A DNA stretch of 64,000 nt from sequence record NC_070963.1; one strand, given 5' to 3'. Positions 2,172-53,667 of this stretch are shown piece after piece. The first letter of the stretch is position 1. Each line of letters starts with the position of its first letter. A program made the translations under genes and the position numbers. The notes under the pieces were generated by a model, which did no database searches, was not told the DNA's origin, and was given only the letters and a program-made list of their open reading frames with translations.

Positions 2172-2582
2172 ATGAATACTAAAATTTGTACAAAATGTAA
2201 AGAAGAAAAACCAAGAGATAATATAAGTTTTCCCCCACATAATAAGTGTAAAGATGGTTTAGATAGTTGGTGTAGAAAATGTAGAGCAAATTATAGATCA
2301 GAAATATGTAGAGGAAAATTTAGAGGGCAACTTACAGATGATGAAGTTAGGAAATTAAAAAAACAAGAAAAATGTGATATATGTGGAGGTAATGAAATTG
2401 CAGGATCTAGAAATAATATACATGTCGGAAAACTATACGCACTAGTAATGGATCATAATCATAATAGTGGAAAGTTTCGTGGAATGTTATGCCACCATTG
2501 CAATAGAGGTTTGGGAAATTTTAAGGATAATATAAATACTTTACATGCAGCAATAGAGTATTTAAGAGAAAGAGATAAGTAA
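2172..2582 (+). CDS. Endonuclease VII-family (His-Me) putative homing endonuclease
   Basis: CxxC motifs, DHNHNSGKFRGMLCHHCNRGLGNFKDN core. Confidence 0.85.
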   Translation: MNTKICTKCKEEKPRDNISFPPHNKCKDGLDSWCRKCRANYRSEICRGKFRGQLTDDEVRKLKKQEKCDICGGNEIAGSRNNIHVGKLYALVMDHNHNSGKFRGMLCHHCNRGLGNFKDNINTLHAAIEYLRERDK

Positions 2583-2890
2583 TGAAATCTTTCAAACAGT
2601 TTATTTCAGAGAGTGTAAATATAGCAGGAGATTTCAATGGAAATCTTTATATGAACAGTTCTCAACCAGAACAAGCAACCGAATCTTTTCTTGCTGATAT
2701 AGTTTGGCAGGGTAAGTTATATCGTATGGAAGTGGAAGGTAAAATGCTCGATAAAAATGCGTTAACAGAACAACTTCAAGATGAGTATCCTGGAGCAATT
2801 GTTCATAACATTTATCCAGCAACATCAAATCCTTTAAAGATTAAAAACGCACAGAGATATAGACCTGAAAGTTTAACTTGGAGTGATTAA
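2582..2890 (+). CDS. Hypothetical protein with CTS-like N-terminus (MKSFKQFISE)
   Basis: ORF track; start overlaps upstream stop codon. Confidence 0.7.
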   Translation: MKSFKQFISESVNIAGDFNGNLYMNSSQPEQATESFLADIVWQGKLYRMEVEGKMLDKNALTEQLQDEYPGAIVHNIYPATSNPLKIKNAQRYRPESLTWSD

Positions 2891-2893
2891 TTA

Positions 2894-4213
2894 ATGGCAC
2901 AGTGGAATAAGAATGAACAAGATTATTTAAATCAGGAAAGAACACTTTTTGAAGTTAATGGTGTTGCGACAAGAGATGGACATATTGTAGACGAATATAA
3001 TCCATTTCCAGTAACTATAAACACAGATGCTTTTGGAAGAACAAGAGTATCAAACCCACTTACACTTTTTGATTCATCTCACAGATATAGGGATAATAAT
3101 CTATGGGAATCCTTAGTTGTGGGAACTGGTTCTACGGTTGGATTTGTAACAGCACAGGGTTTAGTTTCTCTTGGAATTGGAACCACTGCCGGTTGTTCTA
3201 TCACAAGAGAAACCACAAAGGTATTTTCATATCAACCAGGAAAATCTTTATTAATTTTGAATACTTTTGTGATGAATGCACCAAAAGAAAATCTTCGCCA
3301 AAGAGCAGGATATTTTGGTGCTGATAATGGAATTTATTTTGAAGTTGCAGGAATTGGATCTACTTCTGTAAGTTTTGTAGAAAGAAGTTTGTCAACTGGA
3401 ACAGAAACAAAAGTTCCACAATCTCAATGGAACGGAGATAAATTAGATGGAACAGGGCATTCTGGATTAACTTTAGATACATCCAAAGCACAAATTTTGT
3501 GGACAGATGTTGAATGGTTAGGATTAGGAACTGTACGAGTTGGATTTGTAATCAATGGAAAATTCATCCATTGTCATTCTTTCCATCACGCAAATATAAT
3601 TGAATCTACTTACATGACAACTGCTTCTTTGCCGTTGAGATTGGAAATTTCAAATACTGGAATTACTACAAGTTCAAGTATATTCAAACAAGTTTGTTCA
3701 ACTGTTATTTCAGAAGGTGGATATGAACTTCGTGGATTGCAACAAGCAGTACAAACTCCTATTACTACTCCAGTAGATTTGCCAGTTGCGGGAACATATT
3801 ATCCAATAATCTCTCTTCGTCTTAAAACTTCTCCCAATAGATTAGATGCAATCGCTATTTTGACTGCATTATCAATAATGGGTTCTGGAAATGGTCCAAA
3901 ATATAACTGGCAAATGAGAGCATCCGCAACTACAAGTGGTGGAACTTGGGTTGATGCTGGTACTGATAGTGCTGTGGAATACAAACTTGATGGTGGAACT
4001 GTAACTGGTGGAAGAATATTAGCATCTGGATTTTTAACATCAGCAAACCAAACGACACCAACAGTTGATATTCTTAAAGAAGCACTATTTAAATTCCAAT
4101 TAGAGAGAAATTCATTTACTGGAACACCTTATGAACTAACACTTGTTTGTGCCAGTGATACTGCTGGTGCTGATGTGTTTGCTTCAATGGACTGGGAAGA
4201 AATTAGTAGATAA
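2894..4213 (+). CDS. Probable virion structural protein (beta-rich, G/S/T-rich, 439 aa)
   Basis: Long ORF in late operon; composition typical of beta-sandwich structural proteins. Confidence 0.55.
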   Translation: MAQWNKNEQDYLNQERTLFEVNGVATRDGHIVDEYNPFPVTINTDAFGRTRVSNPLTLFDSSHRYRDNNLWESLVVGTGSTVGFVTAQGLVSLGIGTTAGCSITRETTKVFSYQPGKSLLILNTFVMNAPKENLRQRAGYFGADNGIYFEVAGIGSTSVSFVERSLSTGTETKVPQSQWNGDKLDGTGHSGLTLDTSKAQILWTDVEWLGLGTVRVGFVINGKFIHCHSFHHANIIESTYMTTASLPLRLEISNTGITTSSSIFKQVCSTVISEGGYELRGLQQAVQTPITTPVDLPVAGTYYPIISLRLKTSPNRLDAIAILTALSIMGSGNGPKYNWQMRASATTSGGTWVDAGTDSAVEYKLDGGTVTGGRILASGFLTSANQTTPTVDILKEALFKFQLERNSFTGTPYELTLVCASDTAGADVFASMDWEEISR

Positions 4214-4215
4214 TT

Positions 4216-11231: not shown

Positions 11232-11232
11232 A

Positions 11233-11883
11233 ATGAAACTCATCACAGAAGAAGTCCAACAAGTAAAGTTTATCACCGAAGGAAAAGGTGCCGATAAAAA
11301 AATGTATATTGAAGGAATTTTCCTTCAAGGTGATATTTGCAATCGTAATGGAAGAATGTATCCAATGGAAACTCTTTCACGTGAGGTGAAGAGATATACT
11401 GAGGCATTTGTCAATAAAGGACGTGCTCTTGGAGAACTCGGACATCCAGATGGACCAACAGTAAATCTTGATCGTGTTTCTCATAAAATTGTTTCCCTCA
11501 CTGCAGAGGGGACTAATTTTAAAGGTAAAGCACAACTGCTTGAAACTCCGATGGGTAAAATTGCAAAATCTTTAATTAGTGAGGGAGTTTGTCTTGGTGT
11601 TTCTTCTCGTGGTGTTGGATCACTCAAAATGACCAATGAAGGTCATAAAGTTGTTGGTGAAGATTTTATGCTTGCAACTGCTGCTGATATTGTTGCGGAT
11701 CCTTCTGCCCCAGATGCATTTGTTCAGGGGATTATGGAAGGAAAAGAATGGGTTTGGGATGGTGGAATTCTTCGTGAAAAATTTGCCGAACAAACTCAAA
11801 GAAGAATCAATACTCTCGTTGATCAAAAAATATTGGAAGAACATAAATTGAATCTTTTCAATGAATTTCTTTCAAATCTTTAA
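11233..11883 (+). CDS. gp21: Prohead maturation protease
   Basis: NRNGRMYP, ALGELGHPDGPTVNLDRVSH, GVSSRGVGS, DIVADPSAPDAFV. Confidence 0.96.
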   Translation: MKLITEEVQQVKFITEGKGADKKMYIEGIFLQGDICNRNGRMYPMETLSREVKRYTEAFVNKGRALGELGHPDGPTVNLDRVSHKIVSLTAEGTNFKGKAQLLETPMGKIAKSLISEGVCLGVSSRGVGSLKMTNEGHKVVGEDFMLATAADIVADPSAPDAFVQGIMEGKEWVWDGGILREKFAEQTQRRINTLVDQKILEEHKLNLFNEFLSNL

Positions 11884-11918: not shown

Positions 11919-13079
11919 ATGTCCGTTGGTAGAAATTTACAAGAAATGGAAAACGTAGTAACCAAAGGGGCTGCACCTGCCGATCCAATGAGCACCATTG
12001 CCCAGAATGCTTCTGGAGTTATGATTCCAGGACAAACTGGTAGTTGGGAAGATTTAGGCGGTCCTACCCCAGAAAATTATCGCCCAGACGATGATTCTGC
12101 AGCACTTAAAACTCCTGGAGCAACTCTTGCTCAAGTAAAGAACGTAGTTAATGCTAAAGCAGCAGCTGCTGAACCAATGCATACTATGGCAAAGGAGGAA
12201 GTTGAGGAAGATGATGATCTTGTCGATGAAGAAGAACTTGATGAAGATGAAGAAGTAGTTGCTGAAGAATCTTCTAAAAAGAAGAAGAAAGAGGAAAAAG
12301 AAGATGAAGATGAGGACGAAGATGAAGAGGATGAAATGAAGGAAGAGTTTGACATTGAAGAAGATGTCAATGCTCTTCTTGCTGGTGAAGAACTTTCTGA
12401 GGAATTCCAAGAGAAAGCACGCACCATTTTTGAAGCTGCTATTCGTTCAAAAGTTTCTGAAATTAAAGAAGAACTTCAACAGACTTATGAAAATGCTTTA
12501 GTTGAAGAAGTTCAATTTATTAAACAGGAACTTACCGAACGTGTAGATGCATACCTTGAGTATGTTGCTGACGAGTGGATTCAAGAGAATGCACTTGCAG
12601 TTGAGCACGGTCTTAAGACTGAAATGACCGAATCATTCCTTCAAGGAATGAAGAGTCTTTTTGAAGATCATTATGTAACAATCCCTGAAGATAGATATGA
12701 TGTAATCGAGAGTATGGTAGATAAACTTGATGAAATGGAAGGAAAACTCAACGAGCAAATTGAAAGAAATGTTGCTCTCAATAGAAGATTAGCAGAGTCA
12801 GTTGCTGATGTAATTTTTGCAGATGTCGCTGAGGGTCTTGCACTTTCTCAGAAGGACAAACTCGCTTCTCTTGCCGAAAATGTTGAGTTTGATGGTGAAG
12901 CAAACTATCGTGAGAAACTGGTAACTCTGAGGGAATCATACTTCCCAACAAATACTGGTACTCAAAGGGGTATCTCTGAGAACTTATCAGAAGAAGTTTC
13001 ATATGAAGGAACTGAAAATTCAGTTTCACCAATTATGGAAGCATATCTTCAGACTCTCAGTAGAGTCGCTAACAAGTGA
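11919..13079 (+). CDS. gp22: Prohead core scaffolding protein
   Basis: Very acidic, coiled-coil; FQEKARTIFEAA, YLEYVADEW, LRESYF; located between gp21 and gp23. Confidence 0.93.
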   Translation: MSVGRNLQEMENVVTKGAAPADPMSTIAQNASGVMIPGQTGSWEDLGGPTPENYRPDDDSAALKTPGATLAQVKNVVNAKAAAAEPMHTMAKEEVEEDDDLVDEEELDEDEEVVAEESSKKKKKEEKEDEDEDEDEEDEMKEEFDIEEDVNALLAGEELSEEFQEKARTIFEAAIRSKVSEIKEELQQTYENALVEEVQFIKQELTERVDAYLEYVADEWIQENALAVEHGLKTEMTESFLQGMKSLFEDHYVTIPEDRYDVIESMVDKLDEMEGKLNEQIERNVALNRRLAESVADVIFADVAEGLALSQKDKLASLAENVEFDGEANYREKLVTLRESYFPTNTGTQRGISENLSEEVSYEGTENSVSPIMEAYLQTLSRVANK

Positions 13080-13127: not shown

Positions 13128-14543
13128 ATGCAGATGTACAACAACGAATATCTGCAGGAGAAGTGGGCACCGATCCTTGATTATCAAGGGATGGATCAAA
13201 TCAAAGATTCACATCGTAGAGCGGTAACTGCAATCCTGCTAGAAAACCAAGAGAGAGAACTTCGTGAAGAGCGTTCTTTCCTCAGCGAAGCATCCCCAAC
13301 CAACTCTGCCGGTACTGGTGGTTTTGGTGGTAGTGCAGCAAACACAACAGGAAGTCCTGTTGCAGGTTTCGACCCAGTTCTGATCTCACTGATCAGACGT
13401 TCAATGCCTAATCTGATCGCTTATGATCTTTGCGGCGTTCAACCAATGAATGGTCCTACCGGACTCATCTTCGCAATGCGCTCACGTTACAGCAGCCAGT
13501 CTGGAACTGAGACTTTCTACAACGAAGTAGATTCCGCATTCTCTGGTCAAAATAACAGCCGTAATCTTACTGCTGGATTCATTGATGGAACTGTTGGTTT
13601 AGGTACTACCGCACAAGGCGGATCTAATCCTTCAATTCTTGATGTTTCAAACCAAGCAAATAACGCTGCTACCGGTGCTAACCAGTACAACGTTGGCGAA
13701 GGTATGACCACTGGTAATGCCGAAGCACTTGGTGACGGAGCAAGCAACTACTTTAACGAGATGGCTTTCTCAATTGAGAAACTCACCGTTACTGCTAAGT
13801 CACGTGCTCTGAAAGCTGAGTACTCACTCGAACTTGCACAAGACCTGAAAGCAATTCATGGTCTGAATGCAGAAGCTGAGCTTGCTAACATCCTCAGCAC
13901 TGAGATCCTCGCTGAAATCAACAGAGAGATCATTCGTACCGTTTATAAGGTTGCTGTTCCTGGTGCTCAGGTCAACACTGCTACCGCTGGTACTTTTGAC
14001 CTTGACGTTGACTCCAACGGCCGTTGGTCGGTTGAGAAGTTCAAAGGTCTTATCTTCCAAATCGAGCGCGATGCAAACGCAATCGCTCAGCAAACTCGTA
14101 GAGGGAAGGGTAACATGATCCTCTGCTCTGCTGACGTTGCTTCGGCACTCACCATGGCAGGTGTTCTTGATTACACCCCTGCACTCAACGCTAACCTGAA
14201 CGTTGATGATACTGGTAACACCTTCGCTGGTGTTCTACAAGGTAAGTATCGCGTATACATCGACCCATATTCGGCAAACGTTGCTGCTAATCAGTTCTAC
14301 GTTGTCGGTTATAAGGGTGCATCTCCTTATGATGCCGGTCTCTTCTACTGCCCATACGTTCCTCTTCAGATGGTTCGTGCAGTTGGTGAGCAAACCTTCC
14401 AACCAAAAATTGGATTCAAGACTCGTTATGGAATCGTTGCTAATCCATTTGCGAAGGGTGCTACTACTCCAACCGCTCCAGACAACATTGCAACTAACTC
14501 AAACGTTTACTACAGAAGAGTCAAAGTCGCAAATCTTATGTGA
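13128..14543 (+). CDS. gp23: Major capsid protein
   Basis: GVQPMNGPTGLIFAMRSRY, KSRALKAEYSLELAQDLKAIHGLNAE, FYCPYVPLQM, PKIGFKTRYG. Confidence 0.98.
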   Translation: MQMYNNEYLQEKWAPILDYQGMDQIKDSHRRAVTAILLENQERELREERSFLSEASPTNSAGTGGFGGSAANTTGSPVAGFDPVLISLIRRSMPNLIAYDLCGVQPMNGPTGLIFAMRSRYSSQSGTETFYNEVDSAFSGQNNSRNLTAGFIDGTVGLGTTAQGGSNPSILDVSNQANNAATGANQYNVGEGMTTGNAEALGDGASNYFNEMAFSIEKLTVTAKSRALKAEYSLELAQDLKAIHGLNAEAELANILSTEILAEINREIIRTVYKVAVPGAQVNTATAGTFDLDVDSNGRWSVEKFKGLIFQIERDANAIAQQTRRGKGNMILCSADVASALTMAGVLDYTPALNANLNVDDTGNTFAGVLQGKYRVYIDPYSANVAANQFYVVGYKGASPYDAGLFYCPYVPLQMVRAVGEQTFQPKIGFKTRYGIVANPFAKGATTPTAPDNIATNSNVYYRRVKVANLM

Positions 14544-14595: not shown

Positions 14596-14613
14596 ATCTA
14601 AATAAAATTAAAA

Positions 14614-14784
14614 ATGAAATCGTTTCAACAATTTCAAGAAGATCTTTCTAAAAATGTAATTCGTTTGGATAAAGAATCTCAAAAGAATTTGAATAAAGCA
14701 AAAAAGGGACAAATTGGTCCAGGATCTAAACCAGTTCCACACACGCAATTTAAATTGGAACCCCTCAATATTCCTATGAAATAA
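14614..14784 (+). CDS. Small protein (56 aa) with CTS-like N-terminus (MKSFQQFQE)
   Basis: Manual translation; CTAAATA late-promoter variant at 14598-14604. Confidence 0.65.
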   Translation: MKSFQQFQEDLSKNVIRLDKESQKNLNKAKKGQIGPGSKPVPHTQFKLEPLNIPMK

Positions 14785-33605: not shown

Positions 33606-33785
33606 ATGAAAACCTTCCAGCAATTCATGGAAAAGGTGGGGGATTTTGGAAATCCTCCATTACCAACCAAAGAAAACTGTTATGGCAGAACTGTAAAGTA
33701 TGCTATGGCACCAAAGAAAAAAGTATGTGCTTTGGATACTGATAGTGGTTCTGGTGGGTCTTCTGGTGATTGTGGTGGGGACTAA
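33606..33785 (+). CDS. Small protein (59 aa) with CTS-like N-terminus (MKTFQQFME)
   Basis: Manual translation; CTAAATA at 33586-33592. Confidence 0.6.
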   Translation: MKTFQQFMEKVGDFGNPPLPTKENCYGRTVKYAMAPKKKVCALDTDSGSGGSSGDCGGD

Positions 33786-41210: not shown

Positions 41211-41283
41211 GGGGATATAGCTCAGTTGGTAGAGCGCGGTCTTTGCAAGGCTGATGTCAGGAGTTCGAGTCTCCTTATCTCCA
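41211..41283 (+). tRNA. tRNA-Ala(TGC)
   Basis: GGGGATA/TATCTCC acceptor stem; anticodon loop TT-TGC-AA; GTTCGA T-loop. Confidence 0.93.
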
Positions 41284-41287
41284 CTTT

Positions 41288-41368
41288 GCCCAAGTGGTGT
41301 AATGGTAGCCACGTATGCCTTAGGAGCATATATCGTAAGATGTGGAGGTTCGAGTCCTCTCTTGGGCA
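41288..41368 (+). tRNA. tRNA-Leu(TAG)
   Basis: GCCCAAG/CTTGGGC acceptor; TATGC-CTTAGGA-GCATA; long variable arm. Confidence 0.93.
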
Positions 41369-41427
41369 TTAAAATAAATAAATATATAATAAAAATAGTT
41401 GTTATAAGTAGTAGTTATAACTAAAGA

Positions 41428-42750
41428 ATGAAAAATTTTCACCAATTCATAACGGAAGCAACTTCAGCGTCAGTTCAGGCAAAACGTCTTGGACTTGTTG
41501 GCGATGGACACGGAGGGTGGTATAATAGGGCTACCGGTGAATTTGAGGCAAAAACCGTGGGTGGTCAACTTAAGTATTTCAATAAGCGACAGGTCATTGG
41601 TGGAAAAGATCCTAAACAGAGTGAATTTGAAAAAAATATTCCTCTTGGATCTTCAATTCCAAATCAACCTGCACCTCAACAAGAAGTTCCTGTAGAGCAA
41701 CAACCTCCAGAAGAAATTCCTCAAGAAGCACCTGTTGCAACTCCACCACCAGTTCCTAAAACTAATGGAACTCTTACGATTGCTTTTGGGCGTTTTAATC
41801 CCCCAACAGTCGGACATCAGCAGTTAATGGATACTGCTGCCATGGCAGCAATGGAAGATGGTGGTGATTATATTATTGTTCCTTCCCGTAGTCAGGATAA
41901 AAAGAAAAATCCATTAGATCCTGACACAAAAATTTCATATATGAGAAAGATGTTCCCGGATCATAGTGAAAGAATTGTAAATGATAAAAACTTTAAAACC
42001 ATTTTTGATGTTCTTAAAAAAGCACATAATGATGGATATGCTAATGTAAGAATTGTCGGCGGTTCTGATAGAGTTAAAGAATTTGAAAGATTGTCTAATG
42101 ATTATAATGGACAACTTTATCAATTTGATATGATTAACGTTGTGTCATCTGGTGATAGGGATCCTGATAGTAATAAAGGTGTAGAAGGAGTTTCCGCGTC
42201 AAGACTTAGACTTGCAGCAGCTGAAGGTGATTTTATAACGTTTAGATCTGGTCTTCCTGTTGGTATTAAAACCAAAGAAGCACTTCAACTTTTTGATCTT
42301 GTCAGACAAGGAATGGGTATTCAGGAAATACAACAAGAGGGTTATAATACTTGGGAAATTGCACCAAAATTTGATTCACAATCTCTAAGAGAAAATTACA
42401 TCGATAAAAATATTTTTAAAGTTGGAACTTTTGTCGAAAATTTGAATACTGGATTAAATGGTGAAATTATTCGTAGAGGAACTAATTATTTAATTTGTGT
42501 AACTGAAAATGGAATGATGTTTAAATCTTGGATTAAAGATGTGAAAGAATCATACTCTGAAAAGCACATGGATAGAATGATGAGACTTCCTGGAAAACCA
42601 AATACTCTAATAGGAACATTGGGTGCATTTAAATATGCTGCAATGATGACTCCGGGTGCAATCGGAACTGGTATGGAAAATATTCAAAGTGGTGGAAAAC
42701 CTTATGGTGTTAATTTGATAAATAAAAATAGGAAAAAAGTAAAAGGTTAA
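41428..42750 (+). CDS. HIGH-motif nucleotidyltransferase (cytidylyltransferase-like) with CTS-like N-terminus
   Basis: AFGRFNPPTVGH, KNPL, VGGSDRV, SSGDRDPD, GVSASRLR; starts MKNFHQFITE. Confidence 0.8.
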   Translation: MKNFHQFITEATSASVQAKRLGLVGDGHGGWYNRATGEFEAKTVGGQLKYFNKRQVIGGKDPKQSEFEKNIPLGSSIPNQPAPQQEVPVEQQPPEEIPQEAPVATPPPVPKTNGTLTIAFGRFNPPTVGHQQLMDTAAMAAMEDGGDYIIVPSRSQDKKKNPLDPDTKISYMRKMFPDHSERIVNDKNFKTIFDVLKKAHNDGYANVRIVGGSDRVKEFERLSNDYNGQLYQFDMINVVSSGDRDPDSNKGVEGVSASRLRLAAAEGDFITFRSGLPVGIKTKEALQLFDLVRQGMGIQEIQQEGYNTWEIAPKFDSQSLRENYIDKNIFKVGTFVENLNTGLNGEIIRRGTNYLICVTENGMMFKSWIKDVKESYSEKHMDRMMRLPGKPNTLIGTLGAFKYAAMMTPGAIGTGMENIQSGGKPYGVNLINKNRKKVKG

Positions 42751-42759
42751 ATTCTTCAT

Positions 42760-44418: not shown

Positions 44419-44462
44419 TTATTTTCTAAATAAAGCGGGATACTCTTCACACGGAGGTCATT

Positions 44463-44639
44463 ATGAGAGACGCACTAATAGTGGTTGTTAAACCACTTAT
44501 CATTTCAATTGCAACACATCCGGCAGTTAAAAATCTTGTTCTTGACTTACTTAAAAAGTATGTTGACAGCACAGATAATAGTATTGACAATGTAGTTTAT
44601 GAACTTGTAAAAGAAAAACTCTTCCAACCACAAAGATAA
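44463..44639 (+). CDS. Small hypothetical protein (58 aa)
   Basis: Manual translation; strong SD GGAGG; STDNSIDN motif. Confidence 0.6.
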   Translation: MRDALIVVVKPLIISIATHPAVKNLVLDLLKKYVDSTDNSIDNVVYELVKEKLFQPQR

Positions 44640-44666
44640 AACTAATAAAAATTTAGTCAATATTCG

Positions 44667-44695
44667 GGAGACCAAACTTAAGGTCTCTTTTTTTT
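44667..44695 (+). terminator. Intrinsic terminator followed directly by late promoter TATAAATA (44695-44702)
   Basis: GAGACC-AAACTTAA-GGTCTC then T-run. Confidence 0.8.
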
Positions 44696-44733
44696 ATAAA
44701 TATCATTAGAAAAGAATTCATAGGTAAGGAAAC

Positions 44734-45297
44734 ATGTCTCTTTGGGGCAATAAAGATTCTTTAAGCAATCTTACTGGAACTATCACAATTGATCTTGCTA
44801 CTGAAACCGTAACTGGTAGTGGCACAACTTTTGTAACTGCAGGAATTTCTACTGGGGATATATTAGTAGTTGGTGCTGGTGCTACATACGGTCAAGCAGT
44901 AATTACCGGTGTAACTTCTGCTACGCAACTTTCAATTGGATCAACTCAGTTTCTCATTGGAATTGGCACCGTTGGATTTGGTGCAACAGTAGGCGTTGCT
45001 TATACAGTAACTCAAAAACCAAAATACACTCTTGAAGATGGGCAATATTTTGCTCCTGACGTAAAGGCAAATAGATTCTCTGCTGTTTTTGGTGTTGGAA
45101 CTACTGAGGCAAATGTAGCAGCAGGAAGAACTGTTGGTGGTAAAAATGCTGCTTATGCTGTTGCTCATGCTGGTTGGGTTGGAGTTACAACTTATGTTGA
45201 TACTCATGGAAACTTCAGAGTTAAAACAGAAACTCTAGTTGCTGGATCTAGCATTACTGGAGATGCTGACGATGATGGTAGATATCCAGACAGCTGA
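44734..45297 (+). CDS. Probable virion structural protein
   Basis: MSLWGNKD...HAGWV...KTETLVAGSSITGDADDD; late promoter upstream; G/T/V-rich. Confidence 0.6.
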   Translation: MSLWGNKDSLSNLTGTITIDLATETVTGSGTTFVTAGISTGDILVVGAGATYGQAVITGVTSATQLSIGSTQFLIGIGTVGFGATVGVAYTVTQKPKYTLEDGQYFAPDVKANRFSAVFGVGTTEANVAAGRTVGGKNAAYAVAHAGWVGVTTYVDTHGNFRVKTETLVAGSSITGDADDDGRYPDS

Positions 45298-45306
45298 TAA
45301 TATGTT

Positions 45307-45678
45307 ATGAGATTTGATGAATTGAATGAAGATAATTATTTAATCTTTGCTATAAAATTTTATGATAATCCTCAAGCATTGACTATGGAGGATTTTCAAT
45401 CTGATTTGAAAAGAATACGATATGTCAAGAGATTATTAAAAAAATATAGAAATACAGGTGAGCTTCGAACTCACCTTATTTTAAATCATTTAACAATACT
45501 TTTTAATGTTTTCAATGATGCCGCTGTGCCATTGTTGTTTTATAATTTGGAAAAAGAATTATGGCCAACAATAAAAAGTTTTCTTTTATTTTTGAATAGA
45601 TTTCCAGAATATCCAAAAACACATATGCATGATATTGAAGAAGATATAGAGTGTTTGTCACAATTGCAAACAATTTAA
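45307..45678 (+). CDS. Conserved T4-like hypothetical protein
   Basis: FAIKFYDNPQ, LRTHLILNHLTILFNVF. Confidence 0.65.
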   Translation: MRFDELNEDNYLIFAIKFYDNPQALTMEDFQSDLKRIRYVKRLLKKYRNTGELRTHLILNHLTILFNVFNDAAVPLLFYNLEKELWPTIKSFLLFLNRFPEYPKTHMHDIEEDIECLSQLQTI

Positions 45679-45881
45679 TGGATAAATTAGAAAAATTAAT
45701 TTTTATAATTCATAACATTAAAGAAGAGGCAGTTGCTTCTGCACCAACCAACTCTGCAAATTCTGCTGGATTAGGATTTAACCCAGACACAGAATCTCCA
45801 CCGGTTGATTTGAGAAAAAAAAGAAACTGGAATATTTTTTTCAAAGATATGGTAAGAAGACAGCGAAAAATAAGAAAATAA
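45678..45881 (+). CDS. Small hypothetical protein (67 aa)
   Basis: MDKLEKLIFIIHNIKEEAVASAPTNSANSAG...; start overlaps upstream stop. Confidence 0.55.
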   Translation: MDKLEKLIFIIHNIKEEAVASAPTNSANSAGLGFNPDTESPPVDLRKKRNWNIFFKDMVRRQRKIRK

Positions 45882-45924
45882 ATAACATTAGATTTGTTAT
45901 GAGCAAATCTTACCACCAAAGAAA

Positions 45925-46338
45925 ATGTTTAATCAAAATACCTCATCCGATACCAAAATTGCTGTTTTAGAAGAGCGTCTTTCATCATACGAACTTTTGC
46001 TAAAAAAGATTGATGAAGCAATTCAGATTATGGGTAAAACCAGTCAAAATATTAGTAAGATGCTTGCCGTTCACGACGAAAAAATCGAGCAATGTGGTAA
46101 GACGGATGAGATGATTTCCAAAATGATTGGTGAGTTGAAAGAAGAAAATAGAGAGCAACATAGTAGTGTAACAGAAAGAATTAAAGTTTTAGAAACAAAG
46201 GTTGAAGAAATCGCAAAGTTTCGTTGGATAATTTTTGGAGCAGCGGTTGTAATTTCTTTTGCAATTTCTCAATCTCCTATGGTCGTGGACATCTTGACTC
46301 CAGATTCGCAACCTGCTAGAATAGAGAGCACGAAGTAA
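45925..46338 (+). CDS. Coiled-coil protein with C-terminal transmembrane segment
   Basis: Heptad-rich N-part; RWIIFGAAVVISFAI hydrophobic stretch. Confidence 0.6.
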   Translation: MFNQNTSSDTKIAVLEERLSSYELLLKKIDEAIQIMGKTSQNISKMLAVHDEKIEQCGKTDEMISKMIGELKEENREQHSSVTERIKVLETKVEEIAKFRWIIFGAAVVISFAISQSPMVVDILTPDSQPARIESTK

Positions 46339-46351
46339 TACTACCTTTATA

Positions 46352-47323
46352 ATGGATTTGATTGACTCCAAGTATATTGGACTTGTTTCATCACGTCTAC
46401 AAAAGTTTAAAAGGGTTAAGGCGGATCTCTACAACTTTCGCTGTCCCCTTTGTGGTGATTCTCAAAAGAATAAAAGTAAGACAAGAGGATATTTTTATCA
46501 AGTCAAAAATAATACAAACTTTAAGTGCCATAACTGTGGAGCAAGTTTGTCTTTAAATAATTTCCTTAAAGAATTAGATCCAACTCTTCACAAACAATAT
46601 ACGATGGAGAAGTTTAAGGAAGGACACACTGGAAAAAACTTCGTCGTAGAGCAACCAAAGTTAGAGTTTGTAAAACCAGTATTCAAAACAAAAATTAATT
46701 TGCCAAAAGCATCTGAGAATCAGATTGCCCGCGAATATTTGGAAAAAAGAAAACTTGATCCTGAAAAGTTTTACTTTGCTGACAAGTTCAAAGAATGGGC
46801 AAATACTCAAAAACATACCTTTAATACTATTGGTAAGGATGAATCTAGAATTATCATACCCCTATACGACATAGAAAAGAATCTGATTGGATTTCAGGGA
46901 AGAGCACTTGGTCCTTCTCCAAATAAATACATCACTGTCATGATTTCTAATGACTCGCCTAAACTTTACGGTCTTGAAAAAGTTGATACAACAAAAACGA
47001 TTTATATCGTTGAAGGTCCCTTTGACTCCACTTTCATTGAAAACGCTGTTGCTATGTGTGGGTCCGATGTTGATATTAGGTCGTTTGGTTGGAGCGATTA
47101 TATTTGGGTTTTTGATAATGAACCACGCAATCGAGAAATCGTCAAAAGAATATCAAAGACCATCGACAGAGGTGACCAAGTAGTGATCTGGCCCACAACT
47201 GTTCAGCATAAGGACATAAACGATATGGTTCTTGCTGGACATGACGTTATGAATGTGTTAAAATCAAATACATACGCAGGTTTAGAAGCACAAATTAAGT
47301 TTAACAACTGGAAAAAAGTATGA
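46352..47323 (+). CDS. gp61: DNA primase
   Basis: CPLCGDS...CHNC zinc finger, GFQGR, IVEGPFDS TOPRIM, FDNEPRN, KDINDM. Confidence 0.95.
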   Translation: MDLIDSKYIGLVSSRLQKFKRVKADLYNFRCPLCGDSQKNKSKTRGYFYQVKNNTNFKCHNCGASLSLNNFLKELDPTLHKQYTMEKFKEGHTGKNFVVEQPKLEFVKPVFKTKINLPKASENQIAREYLEKRKLDPEKFYFADKFKEWANTQKHTFNTIGKDESRIIIPLYDIEKNLIGFQGRALGPSPNKYITVMISNDSPKLYGLEKVDTTKTIYIVEGPFDSTFIENAVAMCGSDVDIRSFGWSDYIWVFDNEPRNREIVKRISKTIDRGDQVVIWPTTVQHKDINDMVLAGHDVMNVLKSNTYAGLEAQIKFNNWKKV

Positions 47324-49620
47324 GTAACGGAACAAAAGTAGTCAAGAGAAGCGGTGATATTGAATCTCTTGATTTAAATAAATTACATGTAATGGTCGAA
47401 GAATCTTGTAAGGATCTTGCTGGCGTTTCTGCCTCTCAAGTTGAAATGCAATCTGGAATTCAATTCTACAATGGAATTACCACTGCAGAAATTCAAGAAA
47501 TTCTAATTCGTTCTGCTTCTGACCTAATTGATCTTGAGCACCCTAATTACCAATTTGTTGCTGCTCGTCTTCTATTGTTTTCAATTCGTAAACAAATTTT
47601 TGGAAGAATTTACAATAGTTTGACTGTGTTGGAACATACACGTAAGTGTGTTGAAATGGGAGTTTATGATCCTGAAATTTTAAATCTATATTCTGAAGAA
47701 GAATTTGAAAAGTTAGAGTCTTTTATTGATCATGATCGAGATTATCTTTTTACTTATGCAGGTCTTCGTCAAGTCGTAGATAAGTATCTCGTTCAAGATC
47801 GTAGCACTAACGAACTTTATGAAACGCCACAATACATGTATCTTTTGATTGCGGCGACTATATTTTCAAAGTATCCAAAAGAAACACGTTTAGATTACGT
47901 TAAGAAGTATTATGACGCAATCTCAAAGCATAAAATCAACATTCCTACACCAATCATGGCAGGTGTTAGAACCCCACTTCGCCAATATGCAAGTTGTGTT
48001 CTTGTTGATGTTGATGACACCCTTGACAGCATCTTCAGTTCTGATATGGCAATTGGTCGCTATGTATCTCAGAGAGCAGGAATTGGTATCAACGCAGGTC
48101 GAATCCGTGGCATCAACTCTAAAATCAGAGGTGGGGAAGTTCAGCATACAGGCGTTGTCCCATTCCTCAAAAAGTTTGAAGCAACTGTTAGATGTTGTAC
48201 ACAAAATGGGATTCGTGGTGGAAGTGCTACTGTACATTTCCCAATCTGGCACCAAGAAATCGAAGATATTCTAGTTCTCAAAAATAATAAAGGAACCGAA
48301 GATAATCGTGTCCGTAAGTTAGATTATTCTATTCAAATCAGCAAACTCTTCTATGAGCGATTCATCCGTAACGAAGAAATCTCCCTCTTCTCTCCCCACG
48401 CTGTTCCTGGTCTGTATGATGCTTTTGGCACTGATGGATTTGACGACTTATATCTTCGTTATGAACGAGATGAGTCTATTCCAAGAAAAACTATCGGCGC
48501 TCAAGAACTCTTTCTTTCACTCTTAAAGGAACGTGCTGAAACTGGTCGTATTTACATTATGAATATTGACCATTGTAATTCTCATTCATCTTTCCTTGAT
48601 AAAGTTGAAATGAGTAATCTTTGTCAAGAAATTACTCTTCCGACTAAACCTATTCAACATATTGATGATCCTGATGGTGAAATTGCTCTTTGTATTTTGA
48701 GCGCAATTAACGTTGGAAAACTTAAATCTAATGATGAACTTGAAGTTCTTTGTGATCTTTCTGTTCGTTCTCTTGATGAGTTGATTGACTTTCAAGGATA
48801 CCCCGTCAAATCGGCAGAAATCGCCACCAGAGCACGTCGTTCTCTTGGGGTAGGGTATATTGGTCTTGCTCACTATCTTGCCAAACATGGGGAGCATTAT
48901 GACGATCCTGGCGCTTGGAAATTAGTTCATGATCTAACAGAAGCATTTCAGTATTATTTGATTAAAGCAACTGTTAATCTTGCTAAGGAAAAAGGTGCTT
49001 GTGAATATTCACATCGAACTAAGTATGCTCAAGGTATTCTTCCTATAGATACTTACAAGAAAGACGTGGATGAAATTGTACCTAACGAACTTAAGTATGA
49101 TTGGGAGTCGCTACGGGAGCAGGTTAAGAAGTATGGAGTACGGAACTCAACATTGTCCGCACAGATGCCATCGGAGAGCAGTTCCGTTGTGTCAAACGCA
49201 ACCAATGGAATCGAACCACCTAGAGGATACTTGTCCGTTAAGAAGTCGAAGAAAGGACCTCTTAAGCAAATTGTTCCACAGTACCAAACTCTTAAGAACA
49301 ATTATACGCTTCTTTGGGATATGCCTAGCAATCTTGGTTATATCAATATTGTTGCTGTTATGCAAAAATTCTTTGATCAGGCGATTTCTGGAAACTGGTC
49401 ATATAACCCACAGAATTATTCAGATAATGAAGTTCCTGTTAGCGTAATGGCACAAGACCTTCTAATGACCTATAAGTTGGGTTGGAAGACCAGTTATTAT
49501 CAAAATACCTATGACATTAAAACTGATGAAGTAGTTGAAGAACCAAAGCAAGAACTCCAGTCTCTTCTAGATGATATTATGAGTAGTGATGAAGATGATT
49601 GTGAAAGTTGCAAAATTTGA
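47320..49620 (+). CDS. nrdA: Ribonucleotide reductase class Ia alpha subunit
   Basis: ATP-cone, ASCVL, SNLCQEI, LCILSA, MPSESSS, C-terminal CESC; no intein. Confidence 0.97.
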   Translation: MSNGTKVVKRSGDIESLDLNKLHVMVEESCKDLAGVSASQVEMQSGIQFYNGITTAEIQEILIRSASDLIDLEHPNYQFVAARLLLFSIRKQIFGRIYNSLTVLEHTRKCVEMGVYDPEILNLYSEEEFEKLESFIDHDRDYLFTYAGLRQVVDKYLVQDRSTNELYETPQYMYLLIAATIFSKYPKETRLDYVKKYYDAISKHKINIPTPIMAGVRTPLRQYASCVLVDVDDTLDSIFSSDMAIGRYVSQRAGIGINAGRIRGINSKIRGGEVQHTGVVPFLKKFEATVRCCTQNGIRGGSATVHFPIWHQEIEDILVLKNNKGTEDNRVRKLDYSIQISKLFYERFIRNEEISLFSPHAVPGLYDAFGTDGFDDLYLRYERDESIPRKTIGAQELFLSLLKERAETGRIYIMNIDHCNSHSSFLDKVEMSNLCQEITLPTKPIQHIDDPDGEIALCILSAINVGKLKSNDELEVLCDLSVRSLDELIDFQGYPVKSAEIATRARRSLGVGYIGLAHYLAKHGEHYDDPGAWKLVHDLTEAFQYYLIKATVNLAKEKGACEYSHRTKYAQGILPIDTYKKDVDEIVPNELKYDWESLREQVKKYGVRNSTLSAQMPSESSSVVSNATNGIEPPRGYLSVKKSKKGPLKQIVPQYQTLKNNYTLLWDMPSNLGYINIVAVMQKFFDQAISGNWSYNPQNYSDNEVPVSVMAQDLLMTYKLGWKTSYYQNTYDIKTDEVVEEPKQELQSLLDDIMSSDEDDCESCKI

Positions 49621-49669
49621 TTCAGTTAAATATTACAGTGTGAGTTAAAGTTAATTTGTTGAGGGAAGT

Positions 49670-50851
49670 ATGGTTTTTAATTTTAAAACAAATTCAGAGG
49701 AAAAAAGCATGGTCGAATCAATGACCGTTTTTAATTCTCAAGAAGTAGATACCAAAAAGCAACCTATGTTTTTTGGTCAACCATTAGGATTACAAAGATA
49801 TGATCAATATAAATATCCAATTTTTGACAAATTAACTCAACAACAATTAGGTTATTTTTGGAGACCTGAAGAAATTTCTTTACAGAAAGATAGAGGAGAT
49901 TATCAAACTCTTCGTCCAGAACAGAAACATATTTTTACATCAAACTTAAAATATCAGATTATGCTTGATTCAGTTCAAGGAAGAGGCCCTGGTATGGCAT
50001 TTGCCCCATACTGTTCTCTTCCTGAATTGGAAGCATGTATGAAGGTCTGGGAGTTTATGGAAATGATCCATTCTCGCTCTTACACGTATATTATAAAAAA
50101 TGTATATTCAGACCCTTCTGAAGTTTTCGATACGATTTTAAATGATGATCGTATTATGGAACGTGCTATTAGTGTCACTGAATCTTATAATGAATTTATC
50201 AATAGTGCTCAACAATATGGAACATCTAATGATTGGATTTATGCGTTAGAACAAGTTCCCACCGCACAAAGTACAAGATATGAACTTAAAAGAAAACTGT
50301 ACCGAGCAGTTGCAAACGTTAATATTCTTGAAGGTATTCGCTTTTACGTCAGTTTCGCTTGCAGTTTTGCATTTGGCGAACTCAAGCTTATGGAAGGAAG
50401 TGCAAAAATCATCTCATTGATTGCTCGTGACGAAAGTCAGCACTTGGTCATTACTCAGAACATTCTAAACAAGTGGAAAGAGGGTGATGACCCTGATATG
50501 AAGAAAATCACACAAGAAGAAGAACAGTGGGTCTACAAGACGTTTGAGAAGGCAGTTAATCAAGAAAAACTTTGGGCAGAATATCTGTTCAAAAATGGTT
50601 CTATGATTGGACTTAATGATAAACTTCTTCAACAATATGTCGAATGGGTTGCAAATCGCAGAATGAAAGCGATTGGTCTAAAACCGATTTATGACATTCC
50701 CGCGAAAAATAATCCACTACCATGGACTGATCATTGGTTGAATTCTAAATCTTTGCAAAATGCCCCACAGGAAGTGGAAATTGAACAATACTTAATTGGT
50801 GGCATTAAGCAAGATATGAAAAATGATACTTTTGCAAACTTTAAACTATGA
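49670..50851 (+). CDS. nrdB: Ribonucleotide reductase class Ia beta subunit
   Basis: FWRPEEI, LDSVQGRG, EMIHSRSY, LEGIRFYVSF, IARDESQH. Confidence 0.97.
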   Translation: MVFNFKTNSEEKSMVESMTVFNSQEVDTKKQPMFFGQPLGLQRYDQYKYPIFDKLTQQQLGYFWRPEEISLQKDRGDYQTLRPEQKHIFTSNLKYQIMLDSVQGRGPGMAFAPYCSLPELEACMKVWEFMEMIHSRSYTYIIKNVYSDPSEVFDTILNDDRIMERAISVTESYNEFINSAQQYGTSNDWIYALEQVPTAQSTRYELKRKLYRAVANVNILEGIRFYVSFACSFAFGELKLMEGSAKIISLIARDESQHLVITQNILNKWKEGDDPDMKKITQEEEQWVYKTFEKAVNQEKLWAEYLFKNGSMIGLNDKLLQQYVEWVANRRMKAIGLKPIYDIPAKNNPLPWTDHWLNSKSLQNAPQEVEIEQYLIGGIKQDMKNDTFANFKL

Positions 50852-50994
50852 TTTCTAGTCATCATGAAATTGAGTGGAATCTTGAAGAAATGAAAAATGC
50901 TTACAAAGAAGCAGCAGAATCTGATAAATTTTTATTTGGAGACTTTGATTATTCTTATGTTTGGAAAGAATCAAATAGTAATGATGTTTATTAG
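50848..50994 (+). CDS. Small hypothetical protein (48 aa)
   Basis: Manual translation; ATGA overlap with nrdB. Confidence 0.45.
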   Translation: MISSHHEIEWNLEEMKNAYKEAAESDKFLFGDFDYSYVWKESNSNDVY

Positions 50995-51015
50995 AGTCCT
51001 TCGGGACTTTTTTTT
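50995..51015 (+). terminator. Intrinsic terminator with UUCG tetraloop, followed by late promoter TATAAATA (51015-51022)
   Basis: AGTCC-TTCG-GGACT then T-run. Confidence 0.85.
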
Positions 51016-51049
51016 ATAAATAAAATTATAGAGAACTAAGAAAGTAAAA

Positions 51050-52246
51050 ATGTCTAGAATTACTGGATTTGATGCTGCAAATTTGATAGAAGCATATAAT
51101 GCGGTGTATGCTCCTCAAGAAGAGATTGAACTCACTGAAGAACAATTTGCTGAAGAAGTTCAGCATTGGGTAGACGTTGTATTAGATGAGGGACATGATT
51201 TAAGTTCAATTACTTGGGATGATATTTATTTGATGGCAGAAGATGCTGTCGGTAGAACAGGTAGAAGTTGGGGTCAACAATTTGGGCAAGCACTAAGAGG
51301 CGCGGCTGGCGGTGCTTTAAACTCCGCCAGAAACGTAGTAAGAGGTGCTGCTGATGTTGCTGGTGCAAGTGCCCAAGGATTAATTGGACAAAAAACTACT
51401 TCAACTAATCCACTTGCTAGAATGGCAAATACTTCAAGCCGTATAGTAACTGCTCCAGCAAGAGGATATGGTAGATTTGTTCAAGGCAGTGCTGAAGGAA
51501 TTCTTGGAAAGAGCGGTTCACCAACTGCACCATCCTCAACTACTTTTCAAAATACTGGTGGATATGGTAGATACCAATCGCCAGCAACTCAACAATATGG
51601 CAATCAATCAAGATTTGCTGGTGCTCGTGATGCTGCAGTTGCAAGAGCAAGACAAATTAAAGGATCTCCCGTAGTTGGTCCAAGGTTAGTTGGTCCAGGA
51701 TCTTCTTCGACACCAGCAAGACCTGCTGTTCGTCCTGCAGCAACTACTACTGCTTCCACAAGACCTGTAGCAACCGCTCTCGCTGCCCCTGCCGCTCCTA
51801 GACCAACACCAACAGCAGCAGTTCCAAATGCTCCTGCTGCTCCTAGACCTTCTCTTGCTCAGCAAAGAGCAGAACTTGAGCAAATGAGAAAAAGATCTCA
51901 ACAGCGTATCATGGCACAAGGAGGAACTCCAGCAACTCCTTTAGTTCAATCTTTTGATCCTTTTGATATTGTAATGGGATATTTGATTGATGAAGGTTAT
52001 GCTGAAAATGAAGAAGCAGCAACAGTCATTATGGCAAATATGAGTGAAGGGTGGAGAGAAGAAATTCTTGAGGGAAGAGTTGCTAGTGAAACAATGGGTT
52101 CTGGTGAAAGAAGAAGAGAAAGAAATGATAGATATAGAGAAGAAAATCCAACTCTACCAAGTGGAAATCCTATAGGATCAAATGCTCAATTAATGAGACA
52201 AATGGCACATGCCAAAAAAAGAGGAGTGAAGAAGAAAAAAGATTAA
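51050..52246 (+). CDS. Late low-complexity protein with EGYA...MANMSEGW domain
   Basis: A/P/R/G-rich centre; DPFDIVMGYLIDEGYAENEEAATVIMANMSEGWREEILE. Confidence 0.7.
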   Translation: MSRITGFDAANLIEAYNAVYAPQEEIELTEEQFAEEVQHWVDVVLDEGHDLSSITWDDIYLMAEDAVGRTGRSWGQQFGQALRGAAGGALNSARNVVRGAADVAGASAQGLIGQKTTSTNPLARMANTSSRIVTAPARGYGRFVQGSAEGILGKSGSPTAPSSTTFQNTGGYGRYQSPATQQYGNQSRFAGARDAAVARARQIKGSPVVGPRLVGPGSSSTPARPAVRPAATTTASTRPVATALAAPAAPRPTPTAAVPNAPAAPRPSLAQQRAELEQMRKRSQQRIMAQGGTPATPLVQSFDPFDIVMGYLIDEGYAENEEAATVIMANMSEGWREEILEGRVASETMGSGERRRERNDRYREENPTLPSGNPIGSNAQLMRQMAHAKKRGVKKKKD

Positions 52247-52267
52247 ATTTATTTGTTTAATTTATTC

Positions 52268-52301
52268 AGAGGGTCTAACCAACCCTCTTTTTTTATAAAT
52301 A
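52268..52301 (+). terminator. Intrinsic terminator plus late promoter TATAAATA (52294-52301)
   Basis: AGAGGGT-CTAACCA-ACCCTCT, T-run. Confidence 0.8.
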
Positions 52302-52323
52302 ACTAAAAAAGTAAGAAAGAAAC

Positions 52324-53667
52324 ATGAAGTCCTTTAGTCAGTTTTTGGAAGAATCCTATTTGAGTGAAGAAGAGGCAAGACAAGGATCATTATTTACCCG
52401 CAGTGGAAAACCACAAAACTTTAAGGGTGGAAAAACTCCATTCACTGCAACAGATCCAACACCACTTCCAACATCTAAAAGACTTTCGGCAGGGGCACCA
52501 GAAGCACCAAAAACATCTCCTGGACAATTAAGTATTCCAGAACCAAAAACAACTAAGGTTTCTGGATCACAAGTTAGAAGTTCTGGAGAAGCAAGACAAG
52601 GATCATTACTTACAAAAAGTGGTCAAGCGCAAAATTTTACAGGTGGAAGAACTCCTTTTGTTGGGACTGAACCAGTAAAAGCAACCAAACGTCTCCCAGC
52701 AGCTGCTCCAGAAGCACCAAAAGTTTCTTCAGGTCAACAAGTAATTAGACAAACTTCTAATCCACCAACTACAAAAGCATTACCTCCCGGACAAAAAGGT
52801 GCTCCATTAGCAACAAGGTCTTCTACCAAACCAGCAACAACTCCACCAATTCAAGCAGTAAATGTAAAGGATATTACTCCAAAACCAAAGGCACTTCCTG
52901 CTGGTAAACCACCTTCTGGTCCAAAACTAACAGGAGGAACGGCAAAAGCAGCAAGCACGACATTAACTGCTGCAGGAAGTGCATCAAAATTAGGAAAAAT
53001 TGCAAAATTTGCTGGACCAGCATCTGCTGCGCTTGATACAGCACTCTCTACTGCGGATGAAAGAGCAAAAGGATCTGGTTGGGCGAGATCACTCGCTAAA
53101 GGTGCTACAGTTGCTGCTGGAGGTCTTTTAGGAGGAACTGCTGGAGCAATCGGTGGAGGTGGACTTCTAAGTGCTGCTACAGGAACTGCTGGCGCTATGG
53201 CAGGTGGTGCTGCTGCAGAAAAGGCATTTGATACTGTTGCTGGAGCTAATGCAAAAGAAAGAAAAGCAATGGCAACAGCAAATCGTCAGCGTCAAGCAGG
53301 AACTGCTATCAAAGGTATTGGTGGAAAAACAACCTTTGATACTAAAAAGAATACTATGACAACTGGTACAGGTTCGCAAAGAAAAACAGTTGGACTTGCT
53401 AAAACAGGTGTAGTTCAGCGTGGAGGTCAATCTGTTGCTGGACATCTTGCATATAAAGATGGTAAAGCGGTTTATAAAGCAGGACCAAGTGCTCAATCAC
53501 TTGCTAAAACTTCTTCCAATCCACTAGAAAGAATTGGTAGATCTTTATTTGCAGGAGCATATAAAAAGCATGATATTGCAAAATCTCAGCAGGCATTAAC
53601 AAAAGCAAGACAATCTGATGCTGCTCGTAATAAAGCACTTGGTGTTAAAATGAAGCCTGGTGGATGA
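52324..53667 (+). CDS. Late basic low-complexity protein with CTS-like N-terminus (MKSFSQFLEE) and internal repeat
   Basis: Two ~50-aa copies starting EARQGSL; K/A/G/T/P-rich. Confidence 0.7.
   Translation: MKSFSQFLEESYLSEEEARQGSLFTRSGKPQNFKGGKTPFTATDPTPLPTSKRLSAGAPEAPKTSPGQLSIPEPKTTKVSGSQVRSSGEARQGSLLTKSGQAQNFTGGRTPFVGTEPVKATKRLPAAAPEAPKVSSGQQVIRQTSNPPTTKALPPGQKGAPLATRSSTKPATTPPIQAVNVKDITPKPKALPAGKPPSGPKLTGGTAKAASTTLTAAGSASKLGKIAKFAGPASAALDTALSTADERAKGSGWARSLAKGATVAAGGLLGGTAGAIGGGGLLSAATGTAGAMAGGAAAEKAFDTVAGANAKERKAMATANRQRQAGTAIKGIGGKTTFDTKKNTMTTGTGSQRKTVGLAKTGVVQRGGQSVAGHLAYKDGKAVYKAGPSAQSLAKTSSNPLERIGRSLFAGAYKKHDIAKSQQALTKARQSDAARNKALGVKMKPGG
52372..52737 (+). repeat. Intragenic duplication (~52372-52527 and ~52588-52737)
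   Basis: EARQGSLFTRSGKPQNFKGGKTPF...APEAPKTSPGQ vs EARQGSLLTKSGQAQNFTGGRTPF...APEAPKVSSGQ. Confidence 0.85.

Follow-up and report, generated by a model that had tools for sequence, protein, structure and literature searches.

A short N-terminal peptide shared by unrelated proteins of cyanophage S-SRM01 is probably a T4-type capsid targeting sequence

Introduction

The stretch of DNA analyzed here (the window, 64,000 nucleotides) is the plus strand of positions 124001 to 188000 of the genome of Synechococcus phage S-SRM01 (MW015081.1; 240,842 bp), a T4-like cyanomyovirus of the family Kyanoviridae that comes from freshwater. Positions 41000 to 45000 of the window match this genome at 100% identity (megablast). 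An earlier note, made from the letters alone, had pointed out that five open reading frames (ORFs) of the window, whose products seemed to have nothing else in common, start with nearly the same peptide of 9 or 10 amino acids, and had likened this leader to the capsid targeting sequence (CTS) carried by the internal proteins of phage T4. This raises the question of why proteins of such different size and composition should begin alike. Here we describe that the leader is confined to the very start of ORFs, that selection acts on it as a peptide and at the residues on which the T4 signal depends, and that tagged orthologues of one of the proteins, an enzyme, are found in virions of related phages. 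The most likely explanation is that S-SRM01 uses a T4-type CTS for a varied set of proteins.

Results and Discussion

The leader opens nine ORFs of S-SRM01 and occurs nowhere else in its genome

Each of the five N-termini named in the earlier note is present and opens an ORF on the plus strand of the window. They are as follows, a slash marking the end of the leader and candidate cleavage site here and below:

2582..2890, + strand: leader ORF 1, MKSFKQFISE/S (leader at 2582-2611); 102 aa, pI 5.1, acidic, phrog_1742
14614..14784, + strand: leader ORF 2, short leader MKSFQQFQE/D; 56 aa, pI 10.0; a unit of its own between gp23 and gp3
33606..33785, + strand: leader ORF 3, short leader MKTFQQFME/K; 59 aa, pI 7.7, near neutral
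41428..42750, + strand: leader ORF 4, MKNFHQFITE/A; 440 aa, pI 9.0, annotated as "cytidyltransferase"
52324..53667, + strand: leader ORF 5, MKSFSQFLEE/S; 447 aa, pI 10.7, of low complexity and rich in A, G, P, S, T and K

When the core K[STN][FY].[QE]F..?E was searched in all six frames of the window with no Met required, it matched five times. Every match lies directly 3' of an ATG, with a stop codon no more than 6 codons upstream, and forms residues 2 to 10 of its ORF. Extending the motif scan to the full genome, as the earlier note had proposed, gave 9 matches, all 9 at the start of an annotated coding sequence (CDS) and none internal, over ~480,000 codon positions. The four leader ORFs outside the window are, by record position:

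47292: 67 aa, pI 8.75, mildly basic
81722: 53 aa, pI 10.2, small and basic
82315: 276 aa, pI 10.5, paralogue of 83142
83142: 338 aa, pI 10.7, paralogue of 82315

A position-weight matrix built from the leaders of the enzyme family described below found no further convincing leader in any of the six frames of the genome.

The leader comes in two forms. The long form is a 10-mer, M-K-[STNK]-F-x-[QK]-F-[IL]-x-E, and opens the ORFs at 2582, 41428 and 52324 and that at record position 47292, while the short form is a 9-mer, M-K-[ST]-F-x-Q-F-[QM]-E, found at 14614 and 33606 and at record positions 81722, 82315 and 83142. For the ORF at 33606, GenBank places the start at 33627 (Met8), which truncates the leader; the upstream ATG at 33606 restores it in full and is probably the true start. 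The bodies of the proteins had been claimed to be unrelated, and BLASTP at E<=1e-4 indeed links none of the nine except the paralogues 82315 and 83142. The nine tagged ORFs thus form eight unrelated groups, among which the tag is portable. Five of the nine proteins have a pI of at least 10, which recalls the basic internal proteins of T4.

Selection acts on the peptide and on the residues that are critical in T4

The resemblance to T4 holds at the level of the reference sequence, as ipII and ipIII both begin with MKTYQEFIAE/A (read from NC_000866). Like the long leader of S-SRM01, this is an N-terminal 10-mer, and the two share the template M-K-T/S-aromatic-x-Q/E-F-I/L-x-E, followed by Ala. 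Mutagenesis of the T4 CTS has revealed that residues 4 and 7 mainly direct capsid targeting and that residues 8 and 10 direct processing (PMC9026906).

The constraint on the cyanophage leader could be followed within one cargo family. A homology search with the 440-aa ORF, independent of the motif, gave 120 close relatives, and 117 of these start with [MV]-K-x-[FY]. Throughout the 117 homologues K2, F7 and E10 are invariant. Position 4 holds F in 115 of them and Y in the other 2, I or L occupies position 8 apart from a single V, and Ala is found at position 11 in 113. Positions 3, 5 and 9 are free (entropy, 1.8 to 2.7 bits). One homologue begins with MKTYKEFIKE/A. Because residues 4, 7, 8 and 10 are the conserved ones, the pattern of constraint in this family matches the experimental map of the T4 signal.

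A comparison of the nine leader copies in S-SRM01 at the DNA level points in the same direction. The conserved codons have a nucleotide identity of 0.95 at positions 1 and 2 and of 0.47 at position 3; every synonymous codon occurs for Lys, Phe, Gln, Glu and Ser; and the 40 nt on each side of the leaders are ~0.30 identical, which is random for this composition. Since third positions are randomized and the flanks are random, a mobile DNA cassette and an explanation at the mRNA level are excluded, and the signal lies in the peptide.

The maturation machinery is encoded in the same window

A T4-type CTS needs to be seen together with the proteins expected to act on it, which are encoded within a few kilobases:

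11233..11883, + strand: gp21-type prohead protease, the expected leader-removing enzyme (Pfam Peptidase_S77, E=7.9e-37)
11919..13079, + strand: gp22 scaffolding core protein, by analogy with T4 the expected docking partner of the leader (Pfam T4_CASP, E=3e-80)
13128..14543, + strand: gp23 major capsid precursor (Pfam Gp23 domain from residue 78)

In GenBank the protease gene is labeled "primosomal protein," a mislabel for a gene that occupies the canonical place between the portal gene and gp22. T4 gp21 and related proteases recognize a short motif and cleave on the C-terminal side of its Glu (PMC9026906). A candidate maturation site of this type, SFLSE/ASP, is located at residues 51 to 54 of gp23 (nucleotides 13278-13289), ahead of the Pfam domain, and GILTE/AAP is found at the equivalent place in gp23 of the related phage S-SZBM1. 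The N-terminus of gp21 itself contains MKLITE/E and KFITE/G as leader-like candidate sites. Judged by their sequences, these putative gp23 and gp21 sites closely resemble the leader ends QFISE/S, QFITE/A and QFLEE/S, at which the protease would be expected to cut.

Late-promoter-like boxes precede the leader ORFs

The earlier note had placed late-promoter boxes upstream of all five leaders of the window, and late-promoter-like boxes are found there, the one before 41428 being weaker than the others:

2531..2538, + strand: TATAAATA late-promoter-like box, 44 nt upstream of leader ORF 2582
14597-14604, + strand: TCTAAATA box upstream of leader ORF 14614, after a terminator-like hairpin (14567-14589)
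33585-33592, + strand: TCTAAATA box ending 14 nt before leader ORF 33606
41373..41384, + strand: AATAAATAAATA, a weak late-box candidate upstream of 41428, just 3' of tRNA-Leu (two tRNA genes come before)
52294-52301, + strand: TATAAATA box upstream of leader ORF 52324, after a terminator-like hairpin (52268-52288)

Their association with the leader bears out the enrichment that had been predicted. TATAAATA or CTAAATA occurs no more than 80 nt upstream of 4/5 leader ORFs versus 14/74 other CDS of the window (Fisher p=0.009), and the corresponding values for NTAAATA are 5/5 versus 21/74 (p=0.003). In the whole window, TATAAATA or CTAAATA is present 23 times on the plus strand and 3 times on the minus strand. 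This bias agrees with the genes pointing almost all one way, and it suggests that the majority of the boxes are real late promoters. The ORFs at 14614 and 52324 look like separate late units, each with a hairpin followed by a box.

Tagged orthologues of the enzyme are virion proteins

Proteomes of CsCl-purified particles are available for two relatives. In S-SM1 virions, the cytidylyltransferase (T4-GC190) was represented by 25 peptide counts, versus 18 for gp20 and 8 for gp21 (PMC3037559). This protein, SSM1_190, begins with MKKFSAFLNE/AERS, the sole strict leader in the whole S-SM1 genome. A looser pattern adds only SSM1_192 (T4-GC1455), whose start, MLSFKELQE, is a degenerate leader, and this protein was detected in the virions as well, with 7 counts (PMC3037559). 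In S-SZBM1 particles, liquid chromatography-mass spectrometry identified 30 proteins, and one enzyme was among them, the cytidylyltransferase SSZBM1_140 (PMC9146016). Its N-terminus, MRFRQFIIE/AVAAAAK, corresponds to the leader minus one residue; the strict regular expression misses it, and the leader was recognized by eye.

The leader is widespread at ORF starts in viral contigs of T4-like cyanophages

We scanned the viral contigs of IMG/VR with degenerate DNA patterns for the long and the short leader (at least 120 loci each) and, as a control, cellular genomes (likewise at least 120 loci); the viral and cellular scans are comparable by the position of the matches within ORFs and not by their density. 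For the long type, 115 of the 122 matches listed start at the first ATG that follows a stop in the same frame, and in 109 of these the ORF is 40 aa or longer. Among the matches listed, Ser or Thr accounts for 81% at residue 3, which the pattern left free, and Ala or Ser for 68% at residue 11, and the cargo falls into at least 53 unrelated clusters; 112 of the 120 long-type loci listed share genes with S-SRM01, including gp41, tail sheath, terminase and portal. For the short type, 112 of the 122 matches listed are at the first ATG, with at least 38 clusters, and among the matches listed the median ORF is 55 aa long and the pI is above 9 in 99%. Over the 4.1 million codon positions of the listed viral loci, the motif is found 6 times without a preceding Met and 264 times with one. 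In the control, the same DNA pattern applied to 185,579 cellular genomes gave plausible ORF starts for 29 of the 121 matches listed, with a varied residue 3, and thus behaves like noise. A scan of relatives, which the earlier note had suggested, therefore places the leader at ORF starts of dozens of unrelated and mostly basic families on T4-like cyanophage contigs.

One group of these ORFs provides information on how the tag is combined with its cargo. At least 55 tagged IMG/VR ORFs, mostly of 51 aa and starting with MKTFKQFQE[EDS]W, are 63 to 72% identical to residues 3 to 43 of the untagged S-SRM01 ORF at 294-2123. Homology sets in at peptide residue 11, just past the leader. The tag is therefore separable from its cargo, a module subject to gain and loss. 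The ORF at 294-2123 encodes a leaderless protein of 609 aa with DUF5661 at the N-terminus and DUF6321 at the C-terminus, so that the module shared with these peptides is small and tagged in some phages but fused and untagged in S-SRM01.

Proposed capsid targeting and its alternatives

The proposal of the earlier note that the leader is a portable address tag for diverse cargo is supported by the T4 match, by the constraint on individual residues, by the presence of gp21 and gp22 and by the enzyme orthologues detected in virions. We put the probability that the leaders constitute a T4-type CTS system at roughly 75%. In such a system, leader-bearing proteins would be made late, and the leader would dock its cargo on the gp22 scaffolding core during prohead assembly, with F4 and F7 as the likely key contacts. 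The gp21-type protease would then cleave behind the Glu, where P3 is I/L or F and P1' is in most cases A or S, and the mature cargo would remain trapped in the head alongside the DNA. By analogy with T4 only, it would presumably exit with the DNA at the next infection.

Several points weigh against this interpretation. The short leader has F, not L or I, at P3, and the cut after the leader Glu is, for both forms, a prediction from the sequence. Late boxes are short, the genome is AT-rich, and the box before 41428 is weak. The virion support concerns one cargo family and one degenerate leader, in phages other than S-SRM01, and detection in CsCl-purified particles does not place a protein in the head. 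When S-SM1 and S-SZBM1 are pooled, 3/5 leader ORFs versus 68/447 others are virion-detected (p=0.03), but the broad leader pattern behind this value was defined after inspection of the data, and with strict leaders only the count is 2/4 (p=0.12, not significant). SSZBM1_191, the orthologue of the 102-aa protein, and SSZBM1_192 (MKTFKQYITE) are tagged and absent from the 30 S-SZBM1 virion proteins; that the mature 102-aa protein would yield few convenient tryptic peptides is an excuse rather than evidence. Finally, the enzyme was undetected in the shallower proteomes of Syn9 and S-PM2, which also missed gp21, gp4, gp5 and gp14 (PMC3037559); Syn9 gp184 carries the leader MKKFSAFLSE/A.

Some of these points would also suit a tag with another destination or purpose, such as a signal for building the protein into the tail or baseplate, a mark read by a chaperone, or a degron that times proteolysis, since virion proteomics does not localize the enzyme inside the particle and two tagged S-SZBM1 proteins went undetected. 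However, the leader is near-identical to the experimentally defined head-targeting peptide of T4, the four functional positions included, its end resembles the candidate gp21 sites in the phage's own gp23 and gp21, and the cargo is mostly small and basic, as are the T4 internal proteins, so that we regard a different destination as unlikely. Another thought is that the leader is a relic of shared ancestry or of repeated recombination at the 5' ends of genes, for instance with a mobile promoter or 5' cassette, and no longer serves any purpose as a peptide. Genomes of the T4 type exchange genes at regulatory cassettes, and a late box of its own lies immediately before each of several leader ORFs. 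Such a relic is very hard to reconcile with flanks that look random, with a likeness limited to the leader codons and randomized at their third positions, and with specific residues that stay invariant over 117 diverged homologues while their neighbors drift.

Could the sequence instead serve translation initiation? In bacteria, Lys (AAA) as the second codon and AT-rich starts favor initiation, and an A/U-rich, unstructured start might boost late expression. Such a role, however, leaves the invariant Phe4, Phe7 and Glu10 and the synonymous codon variation unexplained, does not account for the T4 CTS match, and sits poorly with the structural late genes gp20, gp22 and gp23, which have no leader; we give it even less credence than the relic. 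Chance or an artifact of ORF calling, for which only the shortness of the motif speaks, is effectively refuted by the absence of internal matches from the genome, by the ratio of 6 to 264 in the viral loci and by the different behavior of the cellular control. All four alternatives are much less likely than capsid targeting.

Comparison with T4 and other systems

The likeness to T4 extends beyond the peptide, in that gp21 and gp22 homologues are encoded and the cargo is varied and mostly basic, with the tag as the sole shared part. There are also differences. The S-SRM01 leader has Phe at position 4, where T4 has Tyr, and an additional 9-residue form that ends in F-Q/M-E. One genome contains nine tagged genes, which are spread over structural and replication modules, and their products include a 440-aa adenylyltransferase-like enzyme and basic proteins of 276 to 447 aa. 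The CTS of S-SRM01 is proposed here from sequence, whereas that of T4 was established by experiment. When the mature cargo was compared with T4 IPI, IPII and IPIII, as judged by family matches and not pairwise, no Pfam or PHROG match bore the name of an internal virion protein. Of the five window cargo proteins, four are without a Pfam family and three without a PHROG, and the matches obtained are to cytidyltransferase or function-unknown families.

In the giant phages phiKZ, 201phi2-1 and SPN3US, a prohead protease related to gp21 processes many proteins of the head interior at a short motif, on the C-terminal side of Glu, and their propeptides are thought to direct incorporation (PMC9026906). 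Those propeptides are long, with no single shared 10-mer and with the motif S/A-x-E, whereas the cyanophage tag is short, nearly invariant and portable, as in T4. The cargo-loading peptides of encapsulins are another case in which a short terminal peptide is enough to load unrelated cargo into an HK97-fold shell. Unlike the leader, these peptides are mostly found at the C-terminus, escape proteolytic removal and attach to the shell instead of a scaffold; their sequences show no relation to it.

The suggestion that this is an undescribed system holds in part. The mechanism would not be new, as it is the known one of T4, but its presence and breadth in cyanophages have apparently not been described, and the T4 paradigm would thus be extended to a distant and ecologically important branch. 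We found no paper that links a CTS to cyanophages or prints the leader; subscription papers, such as those on the genomes and proteomes of Syn9 and S-PM2, were outside this search, and a prior mention is possible.

T4-like cyanophages rank very high in abundance among the viruses that infect the main primary producers of the ocean. The tag would explain why a "cytidylyltransferase" is present in S-SM1 and S-SZBM1 virions, for which neither paper proposes a mechanism (PMC3037559, PMC9146016), and would predict virion-delivered proteins for cyanophage genomes and metagenomic contigs that bear such ORFs. It would also point to early-acting candidates for counter-defense or host takeover and offer a ready-made means of bringing foreign proteins into the heads of cyanophages. 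A bolder idea, which we advance as tentative and are inclined to doubt, is that Kyanoviridae may carry a large, fast-turning-over set of CTS-tagged, virion-delivered proteins that act before phage gene expression, with dozens to hundreds of families of mostly small basic peptides in addition to an adenylyltransferase found from freshwater to marine phages. If so, the injected proteome of marine cyanophages would be readable from sequence, and possible roles in counter-defense or host takeover would include NMNAT/PPAT-like cofactor chemistry and, for the 102-aa protein, binding to RNA polymerase.

The tagged nucleotidyltransferase

According to an entropy profile and an AF2 model, the 440-aa protein encoded at 41428 consists of the leader (residues 1 to 10, within an N-terminal helix), a small beta module (12 to 60), a variable linker rich in P, Q and E (61 to 112) and a nucleotidyltransferase domain with a HIGH motif (113 to 300). 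The Rossmann-type nucleotidyltransferase domain is modeled with confidence and the C-terminal part poorly. Pfam CTP_transf_like matches residues 118 to 220 (29.6 bits versus a cut-off of 21), and phrog_395 matches from residue 108. All NCBIfam matches are far below their cut-offs, the best being the NMN adenylyltransferase domain of NadR, and a sequence search of the PDB gave no match. The nearest folds in Foldseek are NadD/NMNAT (NaMN/NMN adenylyltransferases), PPAT and FAD synthetase, at 14 to 18% identity. The name "cytidyltransferase" is therefore nominal, and the modeled fold suggests an NMNAT/PPAT-like enzyme.

The beta module (QAKRLGLVGDGHGGWY..., window positions 41461-41607, residues 12 to 60) is conserved and has no family assignment. 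It is also found in leader-tagged proteins of 144 to 185 aa, which are too short for the full-length enzyme. The N-terminal peptide of the enzyme would be NFHQFITEATSASVQAK if intact and ATSASVQAK after a cut behind the leader Glu; for SSZBM1_140, the unprocessed N-terminal peptide would be QFIIEAVAAAAK and the processed one AVAAAAK.

Other tagged proteins

The family of the 102-aa protein is represented in 135 cyanomyovirus isolate records and aligns from residue 1 (tblastn). In its AF2 model, residues 1 to 32 are disordered and residues 35 to 79 form a small beta-beta-alpha-beta domain. Foldseek gave no match at E<=0.001 for this protein. The best folds for residues 35 to 79, which fall short of significance, are T7 Gp2 (E=0.09; TM 0.69 on the target) and YkzG. 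Each of the two binds RNA polymerase; the resemblance is a lead only.

The two tiny ORFs of the window and the 447-aa protein match no Pfam, PHROG or (where scanned) NCBIfam family. At least two near-identical 56-aa counterparts of the ORF at 14614 are present in IMG/VR, and the only records of the phage isolate collection that match the 447-aa protein are those of S-SRM01. This protein contains two copies of a unit of ~50 residues (residues 16 to 68 and 87 to 138; window positions 52369-52737) with the consensus EARQGSL[FL]T[RK]SG..QNF.GG[KR]TPF...KRL.A.APEAPK. The basic, low-complexity tagged proteins are likely to be associated with DNA. Outside the window, three leader ORFs (53, 276 and 338 aa) lie within 2.4 kb (record positions 81722-84158), with an untagged 157-aa ORF between the first two. 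In one IMG/VR locus (L204), relatives of the small ORF at 81722 and of the large paralogue family are ~600 bp apart.

Gene content of the window

In the deposited annotation, the window consists of a head and tail morphogenesis block, with the order gp16, gp18, gp17, gp19, gp20, gp21, gp22, gp23, gp3, and a replication block that includes gp43, UvsX, gp41, gp61 and NrdAB. Genes for tRNA-Ala(TGC) and tRNA-Leu(TAG) at 41211-41369 are located directly 5' of the tagged enzyme gene, and short BLAST matches to Lak megaphages are due to this tRNA stretch. Downstream of the enzyme gene, the nontagged ORFs of the replication module at 42760, 44463, 44734, 45925, 51050 and 53710 have a late-type box no more than 80 nt upstream, and the region from 42760 to 55308 resembles a late-gene or virion-gene island set amid replication genes. 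The S-SM1 virion proteome includes the products of six genes located at the enzyme gene or close to it (SSM1_188, 190, 191, 192, 195 and 197).

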